From: Rhodosorus marinus CCMP1338
Lineage: Eukaryota; Plantae; Rhodophyta
Direction of reading: 5' to 3'
DNA: 64,000 nt
NCBI GenBank assembly: GCA_029953675.1
Contig: JAMWBK010000002.1
Coordinates: 2,666,001-2,730,000 of the forward strand
Shown here: one piece after another, positions 3,037-55,849 of the stretch
Layout of the letters: every line of letters starts with the position of its first letter
Numbering within the stretch: position 1 is the first letter of the stretch
Made by a program: the position numbers and the translations under genes
The notes under the pieces: generated by a model
Told to the model about the DNA's origin: nothing
Seen by the model: only the letters and a program-made list of their open reading frames with translations
The model's database searches: none

Positions 3037-4893
3037 CTATCTCCGCTTTCTTCCCTTGTCGCGCTTTTGTCCATGGGGTCCCCGATTGTTCCGAGAATCA
3101 AACTGCTTTCCACCACCTGGGTTAACGTCCTTTTTGCCATATTTGAAGTCCTTCACCTGCGCGATTGAACGAGGATAGTCCTTACCCAGGCGGACGCCGT
3201 ATTCCTCCAACTCGGAATCATCCATCTTGAATATTTGATGGCACATTCCCCCTGGAATCTGCTTCAACTCCGGGCACCACAGTTTCGTGAAAGTAGCGTC
3301 TCCATCGTACGTTTGGGCTTGCAGCACCATGTTGAATCGTCTCCCCCCTTGAGGATCACTTCCAACACCAGCGATGTACGCCCAATTTCCGTAGTTGGCA
3401 GCAACGTCGTGGTCTATCAGAGCGCTCTCAAAGTACTCCGCTCCTGCTCTCCAGTCCGGAAACGCGAGGTCGTGGATTAGGAAGGACGCCACGTTCTGAC
3501 GTAAGCGATTGCTCATGAAACCAGTGGCCCTCAGTTCTCTCATGCCCGCGTCCACAAAAGGAACACCGGTTTCGCCTTTAATCCATTTAGCAAGGTTTTG
3601 GATATCCTCATCCGAAGCGGGAACCTTCGCAAAATCGAGGTCTCGAGCAGCGCCCCAACTGGTCCCGCCGGAGGAACCACCTCTGTGTCGCTGTCCGAGG
3701 TTGGCTAGTTGCGAGTACCCTTTCCAAGCGAATAGACGAGTGTCCTCCTTCACCATCATCCAGCGGAAAAAATCTCTGGTAATCAGCTCAAATATCAACC
3801 AGTACGTGTTCTCGTCAGCTACACGTTCTTCCTCGTACTTCTTCACATTTGCGTGCACTCGTCGAGGAGAAATACAACCCAGGGCCAACCATGAAGACAA
3901 TTTCGAAGAGAATTCGGCTGTTCCAGATCCATTGCGGATTTCTTTGTACTTTCTTAGGAGATCTTGCTTCCAAATCCAGTTATCAATTCTTTCCAAAGCG
4001 GCATCTTCCCCACCCTTGAACTTTAGGACACTTCTTTCATCTTCTGGAGGTTGAACCTCATCAGTCAGAGAGTCGAGCGTCGGCATCGTACCAGCGTCAA
4101 CCTCCACGGAAGGTAGAGGTTTCAACTTCGTCAAAGATGGCAACTCTGGCCGAACGGATGCACTAACTTCGATTATTTTCCTGTACTGTGTGAACACTGG
4201 TGGCGTAGTGTTCTTTGGATTGAACGGTAAATCGCGCAGGTGGTGCAGTGTTCCTTCCCAAGCTAGTTTTAGTTCCGGAGGCCCCGATGGCCCTTCAATC
4301 TCGAGCAGGTTCCTCGTCAGCCTGTGCTCCACCCTGCGCTCCTCAAATGCAGCTTCCTTTGACGCCATTACTGTAACTGGGTTGTTTTCAGACTGGACAG
4401 AGCGTGCTAGCTCGGCGATCACTTCCTCGGGCTTCCCTACGCGAACAATAAGCTTGGACTGCAGCGACATCAGATTTTTTCTCAAATTTTCAACGGACTC
4501 TACCAGAAATCGAGTTCGTATGGGGCCGGTTTTGCTGAAACCCCAGAGCTGAGACTTCCCCGACTCGCTTCCAAAGAGCCTTGGATCAAACACGTAGACC
4601 GGAAGCAAAGCCGAGCCCGTGTTGGCCATTGTGAGTGTAGCATTGTCATGTAGTCGCAAGTCGTTCCGGAACCAAAGGATCACCGTTCCCTTTCCTTCAA
4701 GATCCTCTGCAGTCCTATCTCGCGGCAGGAGCATTTTTCTGTACATGCCCAATGCCCTGCGGAAGCTCCTCCGACCACAGGGATGCAAGGCGGAGACAAA
4801 GCATGCAAAAGGTGCTCGACCACTAACTACGGCAAGGCTCATTCTCTCCCACTTTGTATCGTTGCAAAGCGATACAGATTTGACCCTCGTCAA
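3037..4893 (-). CDS. CRY-DASH: Cryptochrome DASH (photolyase/cryptochrome family), intronless, with N-terminal extension
   Basis: ILWFRNDLRLHDN, SKLSSWLALGCISPR, FELITRDFF, GFMSNRLRQNVASFL, W..GAEYFES.LIDHDVAANYGNWAYIAGVGSDP..RRFN; the GVGSDP..R.FN pattern is the DASH-type signature. Confidence 0.9.
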   Translation of the reverse strand: MTRVKSVSLCNDTKWERMSLAVVSGRAPFACFVSALHPCGRRSFRRALGMYRKMLLPRDRTAEDLEGKGTVILWFRNDLRLHDNATLTMANTGSALLPVYVFDPRLFGSESGKSQLWGFSKTGPIRTRFLVESVENLRKNLMSLQSKLIVRVGKPEEVIAELARSVQSENNPVTVMASKEAAFEERRVEHRLTRNLLEIEGPSGPPELKLAWEGTLHHLRDLPFNPKNTTPPVFTQYRKIIEVSASVRPELPSLTKLKPLPSVEVDAGTMPTLDSLTDEVQPPEDERSVLKFKGGEDAALERIDNWIWKQDLLRKYKEIRNGSGTAEFSSKLSSWLALGCISPRRVHANVKKYEEERVADENTYWLIFELITRDFFRWMMVKEDTRLFAWKGYSQLANLGQRHRGGSSGGTSWGAARDLDFAKVPASDEDIQNLAKWIKGETGVPFVDAGMRELRATGFMSNRLRQNVASFLIHDLAFPDWRAGAEYFESALIDHDVAANYGNWAYIAGVGSDPQGGRRFNMVLQAQTYDGDATFTKLWCPELKQIPGGMCHQIFKMDDSELEEYGVRLGKDYPRSIAQVKDFKYGKKDVNPGGGKQFDSRNNRGPHGQKRDKGRKRR

Positions 4894-41539: not shown

Positions 41540-42900
41540 ACGCCAGAGACTCAATCTCACGATGCACAGGGGAGTACAACAAGGAGAACCATTGGGTCCG
41601 ATCCTGCACGCGCTAGCTCTGTTTCCTGTTCTTGATCACCTCGGAGGCAGTTCCCCGAATTCACTGTACTGCCGTTTCATGACGACACCTCACTCCTGGC
41701 CCCCGATCAACAACTGTTCTCGGTTCTCAATGGAACCACGACCACCTGCAACGGATTGGGGCGAAACTACAACCCGAAAAGTGTACCGTCTCGCACCACC
41801 CGGCGGTTAACGTCGAACTAAACTAACAAAACGAATCTTGCTGGACTTACCGGACAACGGAGGGATTGTACATTCACGGCGTTCCTATCGGCACCTCGAA
41901 CAACGTTTTGCAGCAGACTCGGCGGCTCCTGCTTGAACACGAACGGCTGGTTGAAGGTATCATCCGCCTACCATCAGATTCCTTACCTCAGCAGCTCTGT
42001 CAGTTCCGGTATTGCGCGAGTGACCACTTGACGTATCTTCTCCGAGTTGTGGATGCTGCCGCCGGGGCAGTGTCGGCGCGAGAGGTGGACGCGTGTTCTC
42101 CTCAGGCGTTCAACCGTCTTCGCGGCCCACTTCATGACCACCGCTCCTGTCCGCTGGCCATGCCAACGTGGTTCTGTCGCAGATACGACTCCATTGCCGC
42201 TGGGGTTGCCTGGGATTTTCCTCGGAGGCGTCAATACAACCAGCTGCCGCCGTCGACTCCTGGCTGAAACTGTTCCGAGGCCCGCTCACAGGTTTTCCGC
42301 TACGGTTCCAATGCAACAACCACTCACGAGACCCAGCTGCCGCCTCTACGCCTGCCAGTAGCCTGATCCCACTCGCTGACGAGATCCGGACCCTGTTGAG
42401 CACCATCTCCGGGAAGTTACCAGCAGGTTGTTCCCCTACGATCGCCCGGGCCGCCCAATAGGACGGGATGATCCGGACCCTGTTGAGCACAATCTCGAGA
42501 AGCTACCAGCAGATTGATCCGGACCCTGTCGAGCACTATCTCGAGAAGCTACCAGCAGATTGTTCCCCCTACGGTCACCCATGCCGCCGACTGGGACGGA
42601 CTCCTCAACCCGAGCCAAGTGCGAGTGGCTGTGCCGTGAGCTCCACTACAAGGACAAACTCCCAAGGTTTCTAGCCCATGTGCAAAAGCGCCTTCTCCAA
42701 CGCAGTACATCGATCGGCGTACCTTGCCATAGTCGACGAGCCGACGGTCTCAGTCCAAGCGAGAGCACGTCTTCGTTCAGCCGCGGGTGTAACGGCACCT
42801 GGCTTCGTGACATTCCAGCTGCCCGCACAACCTTTGTCAAACCGGTAGTAGCTCATCGCAAACATTCGACAACTCCTCGGAGTACCGCTCACTGATCAAC
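41540..42900 (+). mobile_element. Decayed CRE/SLACS/Cnl1-clade non-LTR retrotransposon reverse transcriptase
   Basis: GVQQGEPLGPILHALAL (RT4), frameshifted FHDDTSLL (YxDD), GL..NPK, HGVPIG, RYCASDHLTYLLRVV, QIRLHCRWGCLG and GTWLRDIP, in order, with several frameshifts. Confidence 0.8.
42383..42571. repeat. Three-copy 46-nt core repeat inside the retroelement
   Basis: GATCCGGACCCTGT(T/C)GAGCAC.ATCTC..GAAG.TACCAGCAG at 42383, 42470 and 42516. Confidence 0.92.
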
Positions 42901-43500: not shown

Positions 43501-45458
43501 ACTTCCGCGACATGGGGATCCTCGTTGTCAACGGTTATGTAGAGAAACCTCCTGCTCTCCCAGGCCCTTGCTCAGGTCAACAGGAACTATGTCGACTCGC
43601 TAGTTAACTCTCACTTCTTTCGCCAGTCTGAATCCAGAAAAGAGAACCACGAATGTCCGGGACACAGACATCTAGTTTCGCGAAGCTAATCCGGCAATCT
43701 TCCCTCCCCAACACATCAGTCCTTCCCGAAATCCTCATTCTATTTGCTGCCCGTACAGTTTTTTACTTGTTCCACTCAAAAAACCAAGCCATATGAATCC
43801 TCTCCCTCACCGGAGCCTGGGTACACATCAAAGACCATTAACCGTATGTCCCAGCCGCAAATCCCTACCAACCATCTATCCAAGAGTGTCCCTCTAACCA
43901 CCTACGTGTATTACCAAACGATCCATCCGAAAATAGAAAAATTTGAAAACTTTCAATTCCGTTTCTTCATTGCCGAATCAATTAAACTCCACGAGTCTCC
44001 ACGATTTCGGTAGTGTGCACTTTGGATGGCTGAACTGCTAAAAATAGTGTTTTTAATATTCAATCAAAATATTTGGGATTTTTGGGGGTTTTGAGGATTC
44101 TTCTATTGTTTTTGACTGAACGGCGTTCTGGAGCGAACCATCGGATGAAAACAGCTCGCAGAGCCCAGGCGGTGGCAATGAATTGCCCAGACGTTGTTGT
44201 TTAGGTGGTAGGCGCGATGCCTATCGTCGGGGCCTGGTATTCTTACCCTCTGCTTCCATCCGTCACAGGTAACCCCTTCTCTCGGCTGCGTATCATCTTA
44301 ACTCCCGGAGAACACCACATGCACACCCAGTCATCGCACCTTTACCCTTACAAGTACTAAAATAGGCAGCGTTAGAAAGAATTTTCATCACCTACAGGGA
44401 TCAACCAACTAACCCCAGTAAGGTACCCGGTTAGGCATAAAGGGCTTGCTGGCTGCTTGGAATGGATTTGCAGGGTTGAAAACATGTGTTTTGAAGCGCG
44501 CAATTAGGCGCTGGCGCTTAATGCGGGGATAAGGGACATTTATGCATGATCCGATATCTGGGAATTTTGACTGGGCCTTGTTTCCATTGTCCGCCATCGC
44601 AAAATTAGTGTGGGGGTTTCAGAGTTTCTCAAGGCCGATTATGTGTGCGCTTGAGCGCCAAGCTAGTACTGCAAAAGAGCGAATCTGTGTGAAGCCTGAG
44701 GGAGGAATTCTTCTTCCTTTTTTTCTTGTGTTACTCTATCGAGTAACTAATGCCACAATCCGCCAAAGTCTGTCCAAATCATGCGTCTAATGTTTATGGG
44801 CTGCGTTCGTAGGAGCTTTTCATGACTTGTGGCACTGAGAAAGATCTGTAAACCGCGCCAAACCCGTGCTTTATCATTCCGCTTCATGGAAAAACCCAGT
44901 CACGGATTCATCACAGCGCCAAATGGACTTGGCTGGAGCTCCTTAATCTGCCTCACGAAGCACAGCACCCCTTGGTGCCCTTCCACCGCGTGCCTGTACC
45001 ACACCAGGTTCCGAATCCACAAAGCTCTCGCGAATCAATTATTGTCAAAAGCCACGAACGACACCTTCCATCCATTCCATCAATATCCGCTTCAGTCCTG
45101 TCCCCTGTTCTCACCAATAACGGACCATCATTATTGAGAATAAACACAACCACACCCTCTTCCAGTTGTTCTCCTCCCTCCAATCCCAAGTCCTTATCCC
45201 AAAGCCTAACAGTAACGCCATCCTACCCCAGCGTACACTCCCGACACTGTCGGATCGCTCTCAGATTCCGAAATAAATATTTCACAAAATAATTCAAGGA
45301 GATGAATTCTGTTCATCTATTCCTTAAAAAACGTAGAACTTTCTTAGTTTCTAAGTAGATCATCGTATTTTTTAGTATCTAACAGGAAATCATGATTAGC
45401 GCTGGGAAATTGAAAAATGGTATTAATTGGATGAAGAGAAGGATTCGTATTGGATTTG

Positions 45459-46624
45459 ATGGGAATGAGGAGTTGGCAAAGTGGGATTGACAGCGTTTGG
45501 GGGAGGCGGGGTGCGGGTGTGAGGGGGATTAGATCGATGCGACTTGGAACCTTGAGGGGGACAGAGTAAGGGCATAAAATATGGGAGCATTCTGTGTACC
45601 AATTGTAGTAGATGAGGATCATGTTCCTGGATCCGAGGGGTTTTCGAAAGGTGGACGGCATTGGGGTCGGAATCGGCTGTCAAGGATGCAGCTGAACAGA
45701 AGCCGGCCGACGGGATCGGAGAAAGCTGCGTCGCTGGTTGTGGATAAGATCCTGGAAATGAGGAGCTATGAGAGGCTTATTATTGGAATTGTGGGAGCGC
45801 CTGGATCCGGGAAGACAACAACCGCGAGGGATATCAAGAAACGGCTTCAAAGGAAAGGTCTAAAGTGCGTGCCGCTCCCGATGGATGGATTCCATTTCTA
45901 TAGAAACCAACTAGATCTTTTCGAGAATCCTGTTGAGGCACATAAGAGACGTGGTGCTCCCTTTACATTTGATGCTGAACGGTGAGGAACTGTTCCACAG
46001 GGTTTTTTTTTTTTTTGAGCGCATCGTGCTTTGCGTTCGTCTTTGTCGTCTTTCTGAACGTGTACACTCCGCTTAGGTTCATATCGGTTCTTTCCAAAAT
46101 ACGACGGGCGAAAGGACCTGTTCTGGCTCCCGACTTTAACCACAGGAAGAAAGATCCTCGAGAAGATGCCATCTGCATTGACGAGCAAGCTGAGGTATAG
46201 TCTGGGCTGCCGAAGAGATTACAAGAACTTTTCGCACACCCTAATCATATTCCTCTGCTAAGGTGGTCATTGTGGAGGGTAACTATTTGCTCTTGGAAGA
46301 GCATCCTTGGAGCAACGTACGCCCTCTTCTTGACGCTTCGATTTTTCTTGACGTTGATCTCGAAACTTCGATGCAGAGGGTAGTGAACAGGCACGTTGAA
46401 CAACTAGGTTCGCCCCGCAATCATGTCAAAAACCCCTCCTTAAGATTCTTACTGCAGCTCTGAATTCGGTGCTGTCAGGGCTGACGAGGGAAGATGCTCT
46501 GATGAGGGTGAACTCGAACGATCGTCCTAATGCTGTCCTAATTCAAAATAGCGTTTCCAGAGCGGACTTCATCATCAAGGGAAAACGAATCTTTGAAAAC
46601 AAATTCGATAAGGGAAACTGTTGA
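45459..46624 (+). CDS. YFH7-like P-loop kinase (uridine kinase/phosphoribulokinase/pantothenate kinase superfamily), multi-exon
   Basis: IIGIVGAPGSGKTT, PMDGFHFYR..LD.FE....AHKRRGAPFTFDA, PDFNHRKKDP.ED.I, VIVEGNYLLL, W..V, RV.SNDRPNA; N-terminal extension resembles a transit peptide. Start approximate. Confidence 0.88.
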
Positions 46625-49600
46625 ACCGGGAACCTCCCAGTCCCTCGATTATCCGCATAACAAGGGCACGGTCTGCAGAAACCCACGAGGCAGATCCTTG
46701 TGGCGTGGTAGATCTTGGTGTATGATTTAGCGCGTATGGAAGCTGTCTTCCACTAGCCAAAGTATAATTATCTAATATGGAAAGGACTCGTTCATGAAGC
46801 TTGTCCTATGCTAGCCATGGCAATTTCTTAAGCCTGGGAAAAAGTGTGGGAGATTGGGAAGCAAGCATTGACGCGGAAGGATGCCTAATTGCGATTGCTA
46901 GCTCATCTGCATGAGGTGCAGGGACGTAAAGCTGAACGTCACAACTTTCACAGCTTTTACGACGTCAACAGGAAAGTTGCAGTGCATATGTAGGTATGAC
47001 GTGTCAAGGGGAGCGACGGGGACGCGTTTGAATGGCTGGGGTCCAAAGATTCAAAACCAGCAGTGCTCTACGCTGAACACCTGAATACATATTGAAATAC
47101 CTACTTCAGACTCTGATAAGGTGTTATAGAATGAGTCCTGAAGCCTACGGCGAGGATCCCAAAGTTGAAGTGCGAGATTTCTACGCGGAGCTTTCTATAA
47201 GCGCCGGGATGGACTTCTGGGAGTGTGTTCTAGTTGTACTTAAAGAGCAAAACCGACCCTGACATACATGGGAGGTAGCACCGATACCTCGAGGCTCGGT
47301 TTGTTCGCCGCACAGTCGAGATGGAGACGCAACTTACTCCGCTGGTGTGCTTTGGCTGACTGGTCATAACCTGTTTGATGTCAGCATCACACTCCAACTG
47401 CACTAAAGACGTTTCTCTGTTATTGGTTCTGACTTTTCGAGCTGGTCTGGGTCTAGGGCTGCGCGCTCTTCTTTGTTTATCCTGTGGACCGAGCAGTGCA
47501 CGCCTCCAGACGCCAGACCAGATCCAAAACCCAGCAGCCTAGCGCTGTGAGATTCAGAAAAGTCGGCAAATTAAATCATTTGATACCCACCCACACCTAT
47601 GCTTCTCATCCCAAGTATCCCAAGTCAACGCTAATCTTGTGCGATGTGTCGGGTTGGAGATCACTACCTCAAAGACTGGGAGATCAGGTTCGTGGTGCTT
47701 TCGCTGAGCCTTTCCAACAAAGTGAAAGCAGGTCGTGGTTGCCTCTGCAGCGTTTGCGAAGCTTGTTCGACCCTGGGATCGCTTGTCTAGGCACGGAAGT
47801 GGGACTATCCAACAAACCACCCCCCCCCCGGTACGTGGTAGATCCCCCCGGGATCTACCACGTACATATTATGCGTTTTTGGGTAGTCTCAACTATATGA
47901 ATAGAGAAGGACATACGAACGACCAGAAACATCAGCCATACGTTATCTATCCGTATGTAAATCGGAAAATATTTTGTTCGCGTGAAATACCTCTTTGAGA
48001 AAGGACAGCCTGTCAACGGAACCCTCGATGGCTGTCGTTGGGATGAATGACTAAGAGAGCTACTCAGTACGCCTCCTCCGTTGGAACCGTTAAACGATCA
48101 CCGCCGGAGATCCGCGCCTTTGCGCGACAATTTGGAGGGAGTTTATCGCACAGATCAGGGATGAGTATGTAGTCCGGAGGAGAGGTGGAAGTTTTTCTGA
48201 CGACAAGGGTGGGGAGTCCGGGGCGATATTTTACGACCTTCAGCGATCCCACACTTGCACACAAGATCGCTGATGCCAGTCTCTCGCACCGATCACATAC
48301 GTGAACGTCCGCGGGGGACGAGACGTTTGCCTTTCGACGGATTTCGCGGGGGGCAAAACCCACATGACGTAACCTCCACTCGTCACAGATACCAAACAGC
48401 CAAACAGGTTCCTGTTCGCACATAATATATAGATTCCACCAACCAACCTATGTCGGCAGGCACCCTCACTTCCGCCTTCGCGCCTGGCGACGTCGAGGAC
48501 CAGAGCTTCCCGATTAGAAATATCCGGAAAAAAGCCTCGTTTCTCACAATAAATTGAATTTCCCGCCTAAAATTCAATAATTATAGGCGGGTAATTCCCC
48601 GATCGCAGCCGACACACTTTCCTGAAGTAGTCCGACAACGACAAAACTAGCCCCTGAATAACTGCAAGAAAACAACTTCCGAATCAGCAGATGTACTTCT
48701 ACCCCCCCTACCGGGATATCAACCTCATCTCTATCTTGACTGACCTCAATCAAGTTGTTTTCTGCTCCTCCGGCACCATCCGGTGACGGGCTTCATTTTC
48801 CTCCTATTTGAAGGGTTTCCGAATGCGCTTCACCCACCTATCAGATATTACAAAATTCAAATATTTCCTAACACCCTCCCCCTCTCCGCCGGGGGCACGA
48901 GAAAAAATGCCCGGCTGACCGCGCTCGAGGGTTTTCGTCAACGGGGTCCACTGATTGAATATATCTAACGGACTTGCTTCCAAATTACATTCAAAATTTA
49001 AATTTGGTTTGTGAAGGGGGGTACGCAGTAACAACGCCATTTATCTCGTGTCCGGTACTTTTTCCATACTGGACAGCAAAAGAAAATAGAAATTTCGTCA
49101 ACCCTAGCTTCTTTCTTCCCTACCCTTTGCTCGAAGGTACAAAAGCAAATATACAATCATGTAGATATTTTTGACCCCCTATTGTTTTTATGACTTCGCA
49201 CCATTTTTTCCGTCCCTCGCTAAGTCCCCCGCACAACCCCCCCGGGATTTTCTGTTAACTTTACTATTTGCGTTTCTCAGGCAACCGCATCCACAAGTTT
49301 CAATTCTTGCAATTCTTCTTCCACCAATCACAAAGCAACAACCCTAGCAAAACAAAACTGATTGAATCAGTCCACGATGGACTCCGTGTCTAATCACAAC
49401 CCTACATCTTAGCGGGGACTTAATGGTTAGCTCAATCCAGAAACGCATGCCGAAACCCCCCCCCTCAACTTCTACCAAAAAATCGAGTTTCATTGACTGA
49501 ATGTAGTCATTTTTCACAATCTCGTCTGTTTTGAGGTGTTATCGAATCTTTTCTGCGATTGAGACGGCGGTCGAGCGGTTTAAGCTGCGATGGGGGTTTT

Positions 49601-49765
49601 TGAGGGTTTGGGAAGAGTACAAGCTGGCGCGTATAATATGATGTGGATGTGTAGGAAGCTGTCGGGGGTAGCGGCGGGGTTAGCTGGTTGATCCCTGTAG
49701 GTTGTGAAAGTTCTTTCTCAGGCTGCCTAATTTAGTAGTTGTAAGGGTAAATAGTTGAAGGTGCG

Positions 49766-50370
49766 ATGATTGGGTTTGTAGGTGGTGTTGCTCCGGGAGT
49801 TAAGCCCGACACGCAACCGAGAGAAGGAGTGACCTGTGACGGATGGAAGAAGAGGGTAAGAATACCAGGCTCCGACGAGAGGCATCGAAGCCTACCTACG
49901 AGCTAGACCTGAGGGTTTTCATGACCAGTGTAAATATGAGATCGCTGACGATCGGGTTCCTCTTCGTTGATTTTTTCCGTAAATAGGCCAAGTGGAAGCA
50001 GGGCAAGGATTCCGGCGCTACTATGCCAGGAACTTTGCCAAGTGATATCCCCACTCTTCAAGCTGGCGCCGGAGCCGGAGCCGGACCCGCGAGCGTGAGC
50101 ACCTATTCACCAGGACGTACCGCAGCAGCCCCCTCTGCGCCGATGGACTACGGCCGTGCCCCTCCCATGGGCGGCAACGTAACCAGCGGCAAGAGCGAAG
50201 TCCCCCTGTTTGAGCTGTGGAAGGGTGTCAGCGAGGAGATCATCGAGAAGATGAAGGCCGTCAAGATGGAATCTGACAGATCGGTTGTTCAGCAGCATGA
50301 GGAAGACATCAGCTACCTGAATACCGTAAAAAACAAGGCGGCCTCGAAATTAGACAGCGCTGCCAGGTAG
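49766..50370 (+). CDS. Small uncharacterised, probably plastid-targeted helical protein, paralogue A (157 aa, 2 exons)
   Basis: Exon 1 49766-49855 (MIGFVGGVAPG...TCDGWKKR), intron 49856-49986 (GTAAG..AATAG), exon 2 AKWKQGKDSGATMPG...ELWKGVSEEIIEKMK...KLDSAAR*. The splice is supported by the uninterrupted paralogue B sequence. Confidence 0.85.
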
Positions 50371-50595
50371 TCAGCGACCCGTTGACTGTCGTGAAGGCGA
50401 ACTCTTCGAATAAAATTCCGTTTACCAATTATCTAACCGTTCCTTAATCGATGAAGAGTAGGTCACCCCGGGGGATGACCTAAGGCCTTGCAAACTGAAT
50501 ATCTCCGGCAGGTGCTCAGTCGCTTGTCGCAAAGGGCGCTGAGGCCTCAAGCCTAAGAATCTCTTTTGGTCGTTTCTCGCCGTTCACTCTATTTC

Positions 50596-52440
50596 TTAGA
50601 ATGAGTGCGATACCGGTTCTTGACCTTGTGGTGAAGGAGGTGGGAAAACCTCAGTCTTCTTTACGTGCCGCGAAGCTGCTGGTTTTGTGGTTCTCATGGG
50701 AGGTGCTTTGTCTGGCATCTCTCGCCGGGAAACCCTACTTGTGGTCATTGTCCAATGTGGATCACGCCAACATGGATAATGTGGCGGAAGTTTTGAAAGA
50801 GTAGTCTGATCCTGAAGTGGTGAAGCTACTGTGTACTTCTGCAGTATCCGCACATGCACGTGTTCGAACGAGAGCTCAACGCCCTCGCTCAGGACAGATA
50901 GCATCGACGAAACGCTTTCGCCACGTTCCGTTCAGGGCTTGTCATTGCCTAGTTTTTCGTCACTCCGGGGACCCGGCATTCGGAGATGCTGGTCGCCTCC
51001 AGTAGTCTAGCAATCTAAAGATCTTTTGGGTCGCATTGAAACTTGTATTGTGTAAATCCCCGATTCTGTCAGCAGCTTTAGCATCGACAAGGATAAATTT
51101 CCACTGAGATGGACGCAGCGATAGCGGTGAGGATCAGCGCGTATTTCCCAAACACTACTATTGAGTGCCTTGACTAGCATCGACAATCGAAAATGGAGTC
51201 TAGCTTCTGGTCGACCATGGCCTATACATGATTTTCCTGTAGAAATGTATACGGTCTCGGGGTCCTCATGTATGCCCGAGATACGCTCTATTGAAATGCT
51301 CCGGTGTGAGTGTTCATTCTCCTCCAAAGTTTGTAGTCTGCTTTTCCGCCGAACTTTTGGAACTCTTCGTCTTGACGTGGGAAAAATCTGATCCCGTAAC
51401 AGCTAATGTCAAAGCCTTCTCGATGGTGGTCAAAGCAGTTGCAGTCCTGCCCAGGAAACAGCATCAGGTGTGCTAAGCTACTTTGAGATGGGATGGCGTG
51501 CACCGTTCCTTTCGCGAGGATGATCATGAAGTGACAAAACTGAAGTGCACAGATTATGGAATGGCGCAGCGATAGGGGATGTCGTGCTTGACGACGGGGA
51601 AGACTATGCACACGAAATGGAGTGGTAGAAGCCAAATTGTTTTAAAAAAATGGTGAAAAGGGGCTACAGATTCAGACGGACATCCAAATCTTTGGGAATG
51701 CGTGCACCACCAATAGGTTGAGCAGAAGTCTCCGATCTTTGAAAACGTCATGTGGATCAAGGTACCACCTCGGTTAATAACGACGAAAACGCCTCCACGC
51801 CACTGACAACATCCATCTGACAGATCAAAACGAAGCATTGGCAATGCAGTTTACTTTCCCTGCATCTTTAATTACCCTGCTTTGAAGACCACTACAGAGC
51901 TCGCAAACCCCGACGAGCTACGTGCTGGGACTTCCGTTTATTGCGGCTCACGCCGCAGCCTTGTTTCCCAATGAACCGTATCTCTGATCCAGGTTATTAC
52001 ATTGCACTCAAGTCCAGACAAGAGTTTCCTGCTCCTGTTGTTTGGACACCTAAACATATCTGTACAGCGGATCTTGTCCCGCGACGAACTGGGATGAAAA
52101 GAGGTTCTCGAAAATTTCGGCGAAGCATCCGCCTACATTGAAATGTTCTGTGATGGTGGTTGCCACGTCGATTGCTGGATCGGTAGCGGCACGAGGCGGA
52201 ATGTTTTAGCAGCAGGGTCCAGCCCGGGATCGCTTCCAAGGGACAATCAGAATAAGTCTAACAGACTGATAGTCCGTCGGCGGAAATGACCAGTTGCTAC
52301 AAGGCTAGTCAGAACTCCTCGGTAATTAAATTGGATACATTTCTATCCTTCTAACCGCATGCTGCTGTAGTCGAGTCTTGTCCAACCATCTACTGCACTA
52401 AATCAACTTCTCCACCGTTAGGATTCCTCCAACAGCAACT
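50596..52440 (-). mobile_element. Decayed Ty3/gypsy integrase region
   Basis: In the right order on the minus strand: GNHHHRTF..RMLRRNFREP...VQICLGVQ (HHCC-like), RFDLSDG...GVFVVINR..LIHM...RFGCPSES (core-like), STGKSCIGHGRPEAR, and EHVHVRILQKY (cf. VFHVSLLK.Y). Confidence 0.5.
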
Positions 52441-55174
52441 CAAACAAGAGTACTTGACTTATGCACATCAATCAGTTTGGTCCACTTTGTCCCATTTCTT
52501 TTTGGACAAATCATTGGAATTGATTTACCCCTTGCTACGATTTTGCAAAAAAACCCTGCCGTCGTACCACCCGCAAACTACCGCTCTCTCTCCCCCCCCC
52601 CAAACCCGCTTGTCAACCCATGGCTCAAATTTATTCTGTAATAGTAAAAGTCATATCGCTTGTAGCAATAGTTTTAGAAGGCATCTATAAATAATAAAAT
52701 AATTCAAGGAAATCTACAGCTATAAGTAACGTTTTTTGGAATCAACTGAAAAAAATATTGGAAAGACTAAACTACGCGAAATATATAAAATGTAAACAAT
52801 GTTACCGGTATGTTGACCAACAGGCTTTTCAGGTTTCCACCGTAGAACGCTTTTAGTACGGAGTACATTGATGTTCTAAGTAGACAAAAAAAGGAACGAT
52901 ATCCTATTTTATTGTTTGATTTAGGAACCCTAGAGGGCTGTATCTACACAAAGTTGACTGAATCTATGTGCTCTTTCCATCAGGCGCAATCGATTGAACT
53001 TATGCTGTGTACTATTTTTTTGGACATTTTGGATTTCCCAAGCTGAGGTGAGCGGTTATGCGGGCCGAGGACCGTCGGGTTCCAGTCTGCACGAGGAGTG
53101 TCGATAAAAGTGTAGAATCGTGTGCTGTGCAACATGGGGGATGGTTGAAATCATCCAAAATGAGACGAGGAACATTTGGCTCGTTTCTTCTGCTGTGTGA
53201 CTTGTTCACGCACGGCTTTGCTGTTTTTGCATTCTTCCTTTAGTTCGATAGTTCCATAGATCACTCATATATTGACACCAGTGCGGAGGACGATCAATCG
53301 TGTTGGTCCAGTAGCACGACTCTGAAAATAGATCAATGTGAAGAGAAGGGGTGAAAGTTTGCAGCGGTTGACTCGATCAAAGAAAGACACGACAACCCGT
53401 CTCCCTTGTCACCATCCGCAATGAATAGATAGATCCAACAACATCTGCAGGAAGAATAAAATCATCCAGTTGGGAAAAAGGCCTATCTCGACCAACATTT
53501 TTTCATCCGGGGAAGGTCTACAAGAGAATGGTGGGTTGTTCTTAGACGAAGGGACTTTAGGGCTCACTCCGTAAACTGCGAGGCGACGGGTCTCCAGTGA
53601 AAAGGCGCTTCCTGTTATGGCAAAATAGCCCAGCGATAATTCGCTCAATCATTATGAAATTGTACGAAGCACTATAATATAGACTGGACTTTATACCGTA
53701 AAACTCGATCGGAAAATTCGTGAGCGAACCCTACCGTTTCTTGTAGGCTCGGACGCCGATTGGACAGAACAAATACAGACTAGCGGCGTGCGGACTGGAA
53801 CTCCGGGTAAATTGAGTGCACCATTTGTCCTCAAACCCCACTTCTTCGCTCACAAAGGAAAATCGAAACCCCCAAAAACAACCCCCCCCCCTCGCTCGCA
53901 GCACCCACGTTTCTCTTTCCCCCATCTCCCCGAAAACCCATGTTCTAACATTAACTTTTCATATTTTGGTAGTTTTGTGTCATTGTCGAACTTCCTCGTT
54001 GGCACGACTGAATCCGCAACTTCATCAGACAGCGAGTGCGACATTTTCTAGTAAATTCAACTAAGTCAAATTTTATCTTGAAACAAACAGTCACACGCAA
54101 ATTTTTTTCCGGCGTCACTTAAAAAAACTCGAAACCGTAAGCCTCCGAATCCTACCGTTGAAGACTTTGATCGTTTTTACTGTCGATGACATTTTTCCAT
54201 ACATAATTAGACGATATTACAGAGCGGAAAACCTGGGCTGACAAAGATATAAATAGGTTCAAAGACCGCGACCGATGGGCGGTATAAGCGATAAAAATGG
54301 AAAGAGAATAGAAGCTGGAAGACGCACCACGACATATGGAGTCCCAAAAAAATTAAGGACAAATCCCAACCCCTAGCCCCGCCCTCTCTTAGCTAACCCC
54401 CCCTGGCGAAAAAAAGCGGAATGGACGACAGCCGACCGTTTTGCTTTTATTGCGTTTTGTCCGGAACCGGAAAACTATCGACTTGGGACTTATCCAAAAA
54501 GTATCTAAAAGTTCTCTTCTAAACGTGGGTTCCTATTTGCGGAAACTTTTTCTGGGGGTAGAGTAAGGCCTGGACAAACACAGCAGCGGCAGGGTTTGAC
54601 CGTTAAAGATGGGGGGGGGGAGGGGAGCTTGGTCATCCATTTCTTTCTGGCCACCTGTTCCATTATTGTTAAAACTTAAATCCATTCTAGTTTTGCCGGC
54701 CCAATGTCACCGTCTCCCTAACATGCAATCCAGTCCACTCAAACATTGCAATTCTCATTCAGCAAATCAGAACCCTACAAATTAACCAATCGTAGCTCTT
54801 CATTTTTTTTCCAATCACAACCCTACATCTCATCAAATCACAACCCTACATCAAAACCCAGACTTTTTGGTGCGGGAAAGTCCCATCCCCTAACGTAACC
54901 CTACTGTAGAAAGTGAGTAGTCAATCCAAGAAAGCGGGGATAGAGTTCATATTTTTATACTGAATCTTGGTTCTAAATAGTGTCTAGTCATTATCAGTAT
55001 CTCCTCGGTGGAGGTCAAAGTCGAATCTTTCCGCGCATGATGTTGCGCTTCGGGAAGCTATATAATCGCCTGGGGGCAGTGATGAGGAACAGCCGGAGTG
55101 GAGAGACCATCCCATCAAGGAGTTTTCGTGAACAGGACAATTTTGTGGGATTAAGTATATACTAATAAGGAAGA

Positions 55175-55621
55175 ATGGTTGTTGGGTTTGTTCCTGGAGC
55201 GCCTGGAAAGGCAACTGAGCAGAAGAGGGATGAGTCCACCTGCTCTGGCTGGAAGAGACGTGCCAAGTGGAAGCAGGGCAAGTCCTCGGGCGCCGTGAGA
55301 CCGGGAACTCCGGTCACGATGCCGACCCAGACACTCCCTGATATTGCCCAGGGAAGCTCTTTCCAGCAGCTCCGAATCTCCAGCAGGGACCGCCCGCAGT
55401 ACGACTCCTACGACTCGTCGTACGACTCTGCCCCGAGCACTGGATCTGAGATTACCACATGGCATTTGTGGAAGGGAGCCGCTGATGAGAACATCGCTTT
55501 GATGAAGAAGATTCAGATCGAGAGAGACAACCAGATCGTTCGGGTGCTCGAGCAGGATTTGCAATACGTATCCACGTTGAAGAGGAACGTGTCCATGAAG
55601 TTGGACAACTCCCTGAGGTAA
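55175..55621 (+). CDS. Small uncharacterised, probably plastid-targeted helical protein, paralogue B (148 aa, intronless)
   Basis: MVVGFVPGAPG...TCSGWKRRAKWKQGK...HLWKGAADENIALMKK...KLDNSLR*; aligns with paralogue A. Confidence 0.88.
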   Translation: MVVGFVPGAPGKATEQKRDESTCSGWKRRAKWKQGKSSGAVRPGTPVTMPTQTLPDIAQGSSFQQLRISSRDRPQYDSYDSSYDSAPSTGSEITTWHLWKGAADENIALMKKIQIERDNQIVRVLEQDLQYVSTLKRNVSMKLDNSLR

Positions 55622-55849
55622 AAATCTTTTGAGGGAGTAACTTACTTCCCGTTTGTTTTTCAAATTAGTTAAGACTTACGAATAAAATTCCTTTCATCAT
55701 CGAAATCCGCTCATTATCGAGGCCGAACAATTTGTGGAGAATTTTCACCCGACTCTTGTCCGGCTTTTGTCCCTCAAGTCACCTCAAGAGCCAGTTGTTT
55801 CTAGAGCACATGTGCTGTCTATCATACAGTAGTTGGGGTCTCATATGAA

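Follow-up and report, generated by a model that had tools for sequence, protein, structure and literature searches.

Phycobilisome linkers are recognized by the presence of Pfam00427, Pfam01383, FAS1, or a gamma domain that binds chromophore (PMC12837069). In the small proteins ApcG, LcpA, and Lpp2, photosystem II is contacted by a disordered N-terminal region, and the allophycocyanin core is the docking site of a C-terminal helix (PMC11789067). CAAD proteins make up the CURT1 family of integral thylakoid membrane proteins, which is known only from cyanobacteria and chloroplasts (PMC4893482). Red-algal plastid presequences are marked by a Phe at the extreme N-terminus (PMC7038456), and in PMC4510345 the Phe or other bulky aromatic residue of such presequences is placed within residues 1-10. 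In the survey by Patron and Waller, as cited in PMC4510345, Phe occurred in 85% of the red-algal presequences. The organization of red-algal thylakoids and pyrenoids is poorly known at the molecular level (PMC13655443). Here we describe two tandem genes, A and B, in a 64,000-nt stretch of DNA of the red alga Rhodosorus marinus CCMP1338 (contig JAMWBK010000002.1, positions 2,666,001 to 2,730,000). This whole stretch is called the window, and positions are given within it. The proteins of A and B are already in databases as 'hypothetical'. The new element is a shared first-exon module under selection, which A and B have in common with a CAAD/CURT1 gene of the same alga.

The N-terminal module (N-module) occupies the first ~35 residues and reads M-x(1,2)-GFV…TCxGWK[KR]R[AS]KWK. 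The M-x-GFV start that had been described for both proteins applies to A (M-I-GFV) but not to B, which begins M-V-V-GFV. The conserved basic motif is not confined to the pair: the module is found on a third, otherwise unrelated R. marinus gene, NDN08_007971 (protein P0007), ~0.5 Mb away from the window on its contig. In P0007, Pfam identifies a CAAD domain (PF14159) at E 1.9e-14, which passes the cut-off. Its N-terminus is MVVGFVTGVGAGKPATQKRSATTCSGWKRRSKWKE, the corresponding sequences being MVVGFVPGAPGKATEQKRDESTCSGWKRRAKWKQ in gene B and MIGFVGGVAPGVKPDTQPREGVTCDGWKKRAKWKQ in gene A. When the A/B family was aligned with P0007 by hhalign, the probability was 97.9% (E 3.9e-13) and the alignment was confined to residues 1-52, so that the homology covers the first ~35-50 residues. 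Exon 1 of the CAAD gene ends ...TGGAAGAGACGG|GTAAGA and exon 2 starts AGCAAGTGGAAA. This phase-0 intron, right after GWKRR, is at the same codon as the gene A intron, where exon 1 ends ...GGATGGAAGAAGAGG|GTAAGA. Gene B has lost the module intron that gene A and the CAAD gene have. In P0009, a full-length transcript protein of another strain, the N-module and the CAAD domain are joined.

Outside the N-module, similarity between A/B and P0007 was no higher than that of shuffled sequence. By eye, the A/B helix seemed homologous to the CAAD pre-membrane region (SEV...KMK), and this was rejected by Smith-Waterman comparison with 500 shuffles, of which 31-40 scored as high for A and 242-269 for B. 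Unlike NDN08_007971, A and B have neither a CAAD domain with its two transmembrane helices nor any hydrophobic segment; PF14159 was not matched and mean hydrophobicity is negative. The upstream motif shared by A and B (described below) was searched for at the CAAD gene and is absent, and it was therefore rejected as a feature of that gene. The CAAD gene (L001, 4001-5085) has several introns. Residues 37-150 of P0007, which follow the module, are variable between strains and contain many Lys, Glu, and Asp. The CAAD transcript proteins P0010-P0013 from other strains are without the N-module and start MDNAVG..., and some forms seem to overrun exon ends into unrelated sequence. These forms suggest that the CAAD gene has partial or alternative transcripts.

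In all three gene pairs (A, B, and CAAD), nonsynonymous divergence (dN) of the N-module was 0.20-0.32 and synonymous divergence (dS) was 1.6-2.0, which is saturated, and dN/dS was ~0.13-0.17. Since dS is saturated and dN is low, the module copies are old, and it is the peptide and not the DNA that has been conserved under purifying selection. Recent gene conversion as the source of the module similarity was also ruled out, because it does not agree with saturated dS. Between strains, identity was 92-100% in the N-module, 90-100% in the helix, 99% in the CAAD membrane domain, and 60-89% in the linkers. An inverted copy of the gene A 5' end lies 5 kb away (Table 1; blastn E 7e-66, tblastn E 4e-7). 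It has two 1-nt deletions, GFV is changed to GCA, and an open frame is absent. Because of the two frameshifts and the loss of the Phe codon, this copy is a dead fragment, and its presence indicates that the first exon still undergoes copying at the DNA level. No copy of exon 2 was found near it. A retroelement beside the dead copy had been suspected from a reverse transcriptase-like string, and it was rejected after Pfam searches with seven open reading frames (ORFs) at 41.2-43.4 kb returned nothing.

Genes A and B are tandem paralogues in R. marinus nuclear DNA. Their reading frames were confirmed at the positions where a duplicated pair had been predicted, with the addition that gene A needs splicing. 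The two proteins are 38% identical (BLASTP, E 1e-29); identity falls from 62% in the N-module (residues 1-36) to 28% in the linker, and is 38% (22/58) in the gap-free alignment of the C-terminal 58 residues. The consensus string proposed for this C-terminal segment, SE.....LWKG..(E/D)..I..MK....E.D...V...E.D..Y..T.K......KLD...R, was kept in 6/6 family sequences. The spliced gene A product has 157 aa and its gene a single intron, for which acceptor 49987 alone opens the frame and restores ...GWKKR|AKWKQGK. In-frame stops are located 3-5 codons 5' of both ATGs; in gene A the distance is 5 codons and its ATG is the first thereafter. Codon use had been called GC3-rich, and GC content at third codon positions (GC3) is indeed raised, only modestly, at 0.63 in A and 0.72 in B vs 0.44-0.61 in ten other window ORFs.

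NDN08_008140, a gene of Rhodosorus marinus (Stylonematophyceae) located on a 3.48-Mb contig of GCA_029953675.1, matches gene A with 100% identity, and thus the predicted red-algal source was correct. Both genes are transcribed in other R. marinus strains: among their MMETSP transcript proteins, gene A matches P0005 and P0006 (82-90% identical) and gene B matches P0001 and P0002 (90-92% identical). The start and stop in these proteins agree with the annotated genes, and the gene A splice junction was confirmed by P0005 and P0006. The NCBI model of NDN08_008140 (224 aa) splices past the stop at 50368-50370 into a 3' exon, MSAIPVLDL... (50601..; region 50368-50804), which was found in no full-length transcript protein. 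Since the transcript proteins of other strains all end ...SAAR, the 157-aa product looks correct. A 234-aa version of protein A, P0004 (EukProt, R. marinus MMETSP0011), has the AKWKQG...linker segment doubled, and this is probably a transcript-assembly artefact rather than a true isoform.

AlphaFold2 predicted a single confident C-terminal helix of 53 residues in each protein (residues 104-156 of A and 95-147 of B; predicted local distance difference test, pLDDT, >90), in line with the long helix originally proposed. The rest of both proteins was predicted with low confidence, with the N-terminus and linker disordered. The linker is rich in Pro/Ser/Gly/Ala/Tyr. Residues 24/25-36, which include two Trp, are strongly basic (isoelectric point, pI, 10.5-12). 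The hydrophilic helix is moderately amphipathic and opens FELWKG in A and WHLWKG in B. It was rejected as a canonical coiled coil, as hydrophobic residues fill at most about half of the a/d positions in any heptad register.

Proteins of this build could be phycobilisome-associated linkers, either of the long-helix LRC4/LRC5 rod-core class, as originally proposed, or analogues of the 'glue' proteins ApcG, LcpA, and Lpp2. Linkers are typically basic, and so are A and B (whole-protein pI 9.0 and 9.6). A and B match LcpA and ApcG in size (~120-160 aa) and in layout: a conserved stretch at the N-terminus comes first, a disordered linker follows, and the predicted helix lies at the C-terminus. In ApcG, LcpA, and Lpp2, which are small proteins as well, the conserved N-terminal region is disordered, the middle is flexible, and the C-terminal helix docks onto a partner (PMC11789067). 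LRC4 and LRC5 are also nuclear-encoded and have extended alpha-helical regions (PMC12837069), a trait that AlphaFold2 gives to A and B and that is not specific to the class. Neither A nor B contains FxxMA, the signature that marks the core-binding helix (PMC11789067), anywhere; they have FELWK and WHLWK instead, and the middle beta-sheet region of LcpA is missing as well. LRC4 and LRC5 of Neopyropia are acidic, with pI 5.0-5.7 (PMC12837069), whereas A and B are basic.

Searches for a family gave the same picture, in agreement with the prediction that none would be recognized. In Pfam-A (hmmscan, E<=10), A had no family and B had a single match, T7SS_EccB, which at E 0.11 falls well short of the cut-off; Pfam00427, Pfam01383, and FAS1 were not found. 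Single-sequence phmmer searches of PDB chain sequences gave best E-values of 0.17 and 1.6, none for a phycobilisome protein, and a family profile had 0 matches at E<=10 among the PDB chains, where chains deposited as unknown residues are unmatchable. Foldseek returned no meaningful match, with one at E 8.8. This match and those to T7SS_EccB, NDUFA13 (E 1.6), and sidekick-2 and TARBP2 (E 0.17-0.9) were taken as chance. A profile of six sequences was searched exhaustively against 1.84 billion representative proteins and had five matches at E<=0.001: three Rhodosorus family members, P0007, and P0008. The last is a bacterial 983-aa repeat protein (E 1.7e-4) and was rejected, since its match runs through a repeated VELWKG string and seems fortuitous. 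No homologue in other red algae was found in this search, and the full A/B family is restricted to the genus Rhodosorus, whereas linker classes, including the LRC classes, are conserved across red algae (PMC12837069). Because the Pfam, PDB sequence and profile, and Foldseek searches were empty and the family occurs in Rhodosorus alone, membership in the phycobilisome linkers is unsupported, and we consider it unlikely that A and B are linkers of either kind.

We favor the reading that A and B are nuclear-encoded, plastid-imported small helical proteins whose N-module serves as the presequence, and we give it an even chance. The N-module is read as a plastid presequence because the CAAD protein must reach the thylakoid, because the module is its only N-terminal extension, and because a Phe is present at the N-terminus. 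This Phe is residue 4 in A and residue 5 in both B and the CAAD protein, and no orthologue lacks it. Like F-type transit peptides of red algae and glaucophytes, A and B have Phe in the first five residues, an uncharged hydrophobic start, and a net positive charge (PMC7038456, PMC4510345). The earlier label 'plastid-type' is thus plausible, with indirect support from the Phe and from the presence of the module on a CAAD/CURT1 protein.

Import, the cleavage site, and a partner-binding role are steps that we infer as follows. The N-module would be an F-type plastid import presequence inherited from a common first exon, and its Trp/Lys-rich end may stay on the mature protein as a short binding motif. 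In one option, cleavage would occur after the invariant Cys, and GWK[KR]R[AS]KWK would be left on the mature proteins. Plant-type cleavage sites prefer V/I at -3 and A/C at -1 (PMC4510345), and gene A has V-T-C before the candidate cleavage point. The Pro/Ser/Gly/Ala/Tyr linker would be a fast-evolving, disordered middle part, and the conserved 53-residue helix is likely the working part, which probably docks on a partner at the stromal face of the thylakoid.

Several points weigh against this reading. Cleavage at the Cys would give a presequence of only 23-24 residues, whereas the median lengths for Arabidopsis and Cyanophora are 55-63 (PMC4510345). Unlike F-type transit peptides, the module has three acidic residues among its first 25 and is unusually conserved. 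It is far better conserved than usual transit peptides, and this unusually strong conservation suggests that it does more than ordinary import; it may even do something else. The partner of the helix is a guess, because there is no consistent heptad register and no detectable relative.

The sequence KRAK in the module also fits K-[KR]-x-[KR], a simple nuclear-localization pattern. A and B could then be small nuclear or cytosolic helical proteins, in which the basic cluster is a nuclear-localization or membrane-binding signal. That pattern is read straight from the sequence, and acidic residues within the first 25 positions are unusual for transit peptides. The same module, however, heads a CAAD/CURT1 protein, of a family confined to thylakoid membranes (PMC4893482), and a Phe as residue 4 or 5 agrees with plastid targeting in red algae (PMC7038456). 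We therefore regard a nuclear or cytosolic location as improbable, the most doubtful of the readings considered here.

Conservation of the Trp/Lys-rich end might also reflect a function inside the plastid. A short presequence would be removed near the Cys, and the retained GWK[KR]R[AS]KWK would be a shared address or anchor for A, B, and the CURT1-like protein. All three would be brought to one place, perhaps an acidic surface formed by thylakoid lipid or protein, perhaps the Rubisco matrix of the pyrenoid. It is a tentative and rather unlikely proposal that this peptide is a lineage-specific address motif that gathers A, B, and the membrane-bending CURT1-like protein, e.g., at the thylakoid-pyrenoid interface or at the phycobilisome-bearing thylakoid surface. 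In its favor, constraint on the module is as strong as on the functional C-terminal domains, and the module is common to otherwise unrelated proteins. Similar systems exist: the Trp-centered motif [D/N]W[R/K]xx[L/I/V/A] directs proteins to the pyrenoid in Chlamydomonas (PMC7673724), and KWSP in PYCO1 binds red-type Rubisco in a diatom (PMC10288592). The pyrenoid of R. marinus is stalked, and little is known about the molecular components of pyrenoids in red algae (PMC13655443). The likeness to these Rubisco-binding motifs lies in a short motif of Trp and Lys/Arg within a disordered region, carried by unrelated plastid proteins including one membrane protein (PMC7673724, PMC10288592). However, A (GWKKRA), B (GWKRRA), and CAAD (GWKRRS) fit neither consensus: Gly and not Asp/Asn precedes the Trp, the CAAD copy ends in Ser, and there is no KWSP. 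The motif is also present in a single copy per protein and not as repeated stickers, and the published pyrenoid motifs stem from other lineages with a different Rubisco context, so the comparison is purely a lead.

If A and B are imported by means of the N-module, a plastid-targeting first exon can be common to unrelated genes under strong selection, and such an exon keeps getting copied, as seen in the dead copy. The short peptide would be directly testable in a red alga as an import signal or as an intra-plastid address. For thylakoid and pyrenoid organization, a useful point of entry would be a motif by which two small helical proteins are tied to a CURT1-like one, and a true address motif would be a first molecular handle on the internal organization of red-algal plastids. 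If the module is merely an ordinary transit peptide, A and B form a genus-specific orphan family, mainly of interest for red-algal genomics.

The features of the locus are listed in Table 1. Shared cis elements had been predicted for A and B and were found on both sides of the genes: upstream blocks with a 15-mer, and a 3' block with AATAAA. The 15-mer AATCA[C/G]AACCCTACA has 4 matches in the 64 kb (0.19 expected), 1 before A, 3 before B, and 0 elsewhere.

Table 1. Features of genes A and B and of related elements in the window
Feature	Position	Strand	Remarks
Gene A exon 1	49766-49855	+	Encodes MIGFVGGVAPGVKPDTQPREGVTCDGWKKR, N-module residues 1-30; phase-0 GT donor at end
Gene A intron	49856-49986	+	131 nt, GTAAGA...AAATAG
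Gene A exon 2	49987-50370	+	End of N-module (AKWKQG), Pro/Ala/Gly/Ser linker, C-terminal segment, stop
Gene A C-terminal segment, 58 residues	50194-50367	+	Inside exon 2
Gene B CDS, intronless, 148 aa	55175-55621	+	Uninterrupted ATG-to-stop ORF
Gene B N-module	55175-55282	+	
Gene B linker	55283-55444	+	
Gene B C-terminal helix segment	55445-55618	+	
Upstream block of A, common to B	49300-49427	+	Repeat search; one AATCACAACCCTACA at 49392-49406
Upstream block of B, common to A	54739-54871	+	AATCA[C/G]AACCCTACA three times, at 54765, 54813, and 54836
3' element of A, CGAATAAAATTCCGTTTACCA	50407-50427	+	With AATAAA; 37 nt past gene A stop
3' element of B, CGAATAAAATTCCTTTCATCA	55679-55699	+	58 nt past gene B stop; 86% identical to 50407-50427
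Dead inverted copy of gene A 5' end	44207-44416	-	~100 nt of leader, exon 1, and ~40 nt of intron start; 85% identical

The telomere-like sequence AACCCTA occurs 10 times in the window, an ordinary total (6 expected), while the clustering and strand bias are unusual: 10/10 copies are within 49100-54897, all on the + strand, and 7 of them precede the ATG of gene A or gene B by <=700 nt. The 4.8-kb spacer between the paralogues (50371-55174) has a GC content of 0.46, slightly more AT-rich than the genes, and is a long empty gap for a gene-rich window. Hidden genes or RNAs were rejected there: 0/10 ORFs had a Pfam match, no Rfam families or tRNAs were found, and the tandem repeats were trivial only.

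The GC-rich stretch at 42-44 kb has overlapping ORFs on its two strands and an annotated 170-aa gene in which no domain is recognizable. The same stretch includes a 46-nt tandem repeat at 42469-42566 (2.1 copies, 94% matches). A gene of the PRK/uridine-kinase family (45581-45985, +) is located just upstream of gene A. Its ORF starts MGAFCVP, with Phe at position 4, and could represent another case of an F-type presequence within the window. At 3037-4893 (-), a 618-aa ORF with an N-terminal extension of ~60 residues looks by eye like a DASH-type cryptochrome/photolyase (WFRNDLRLHDN...).

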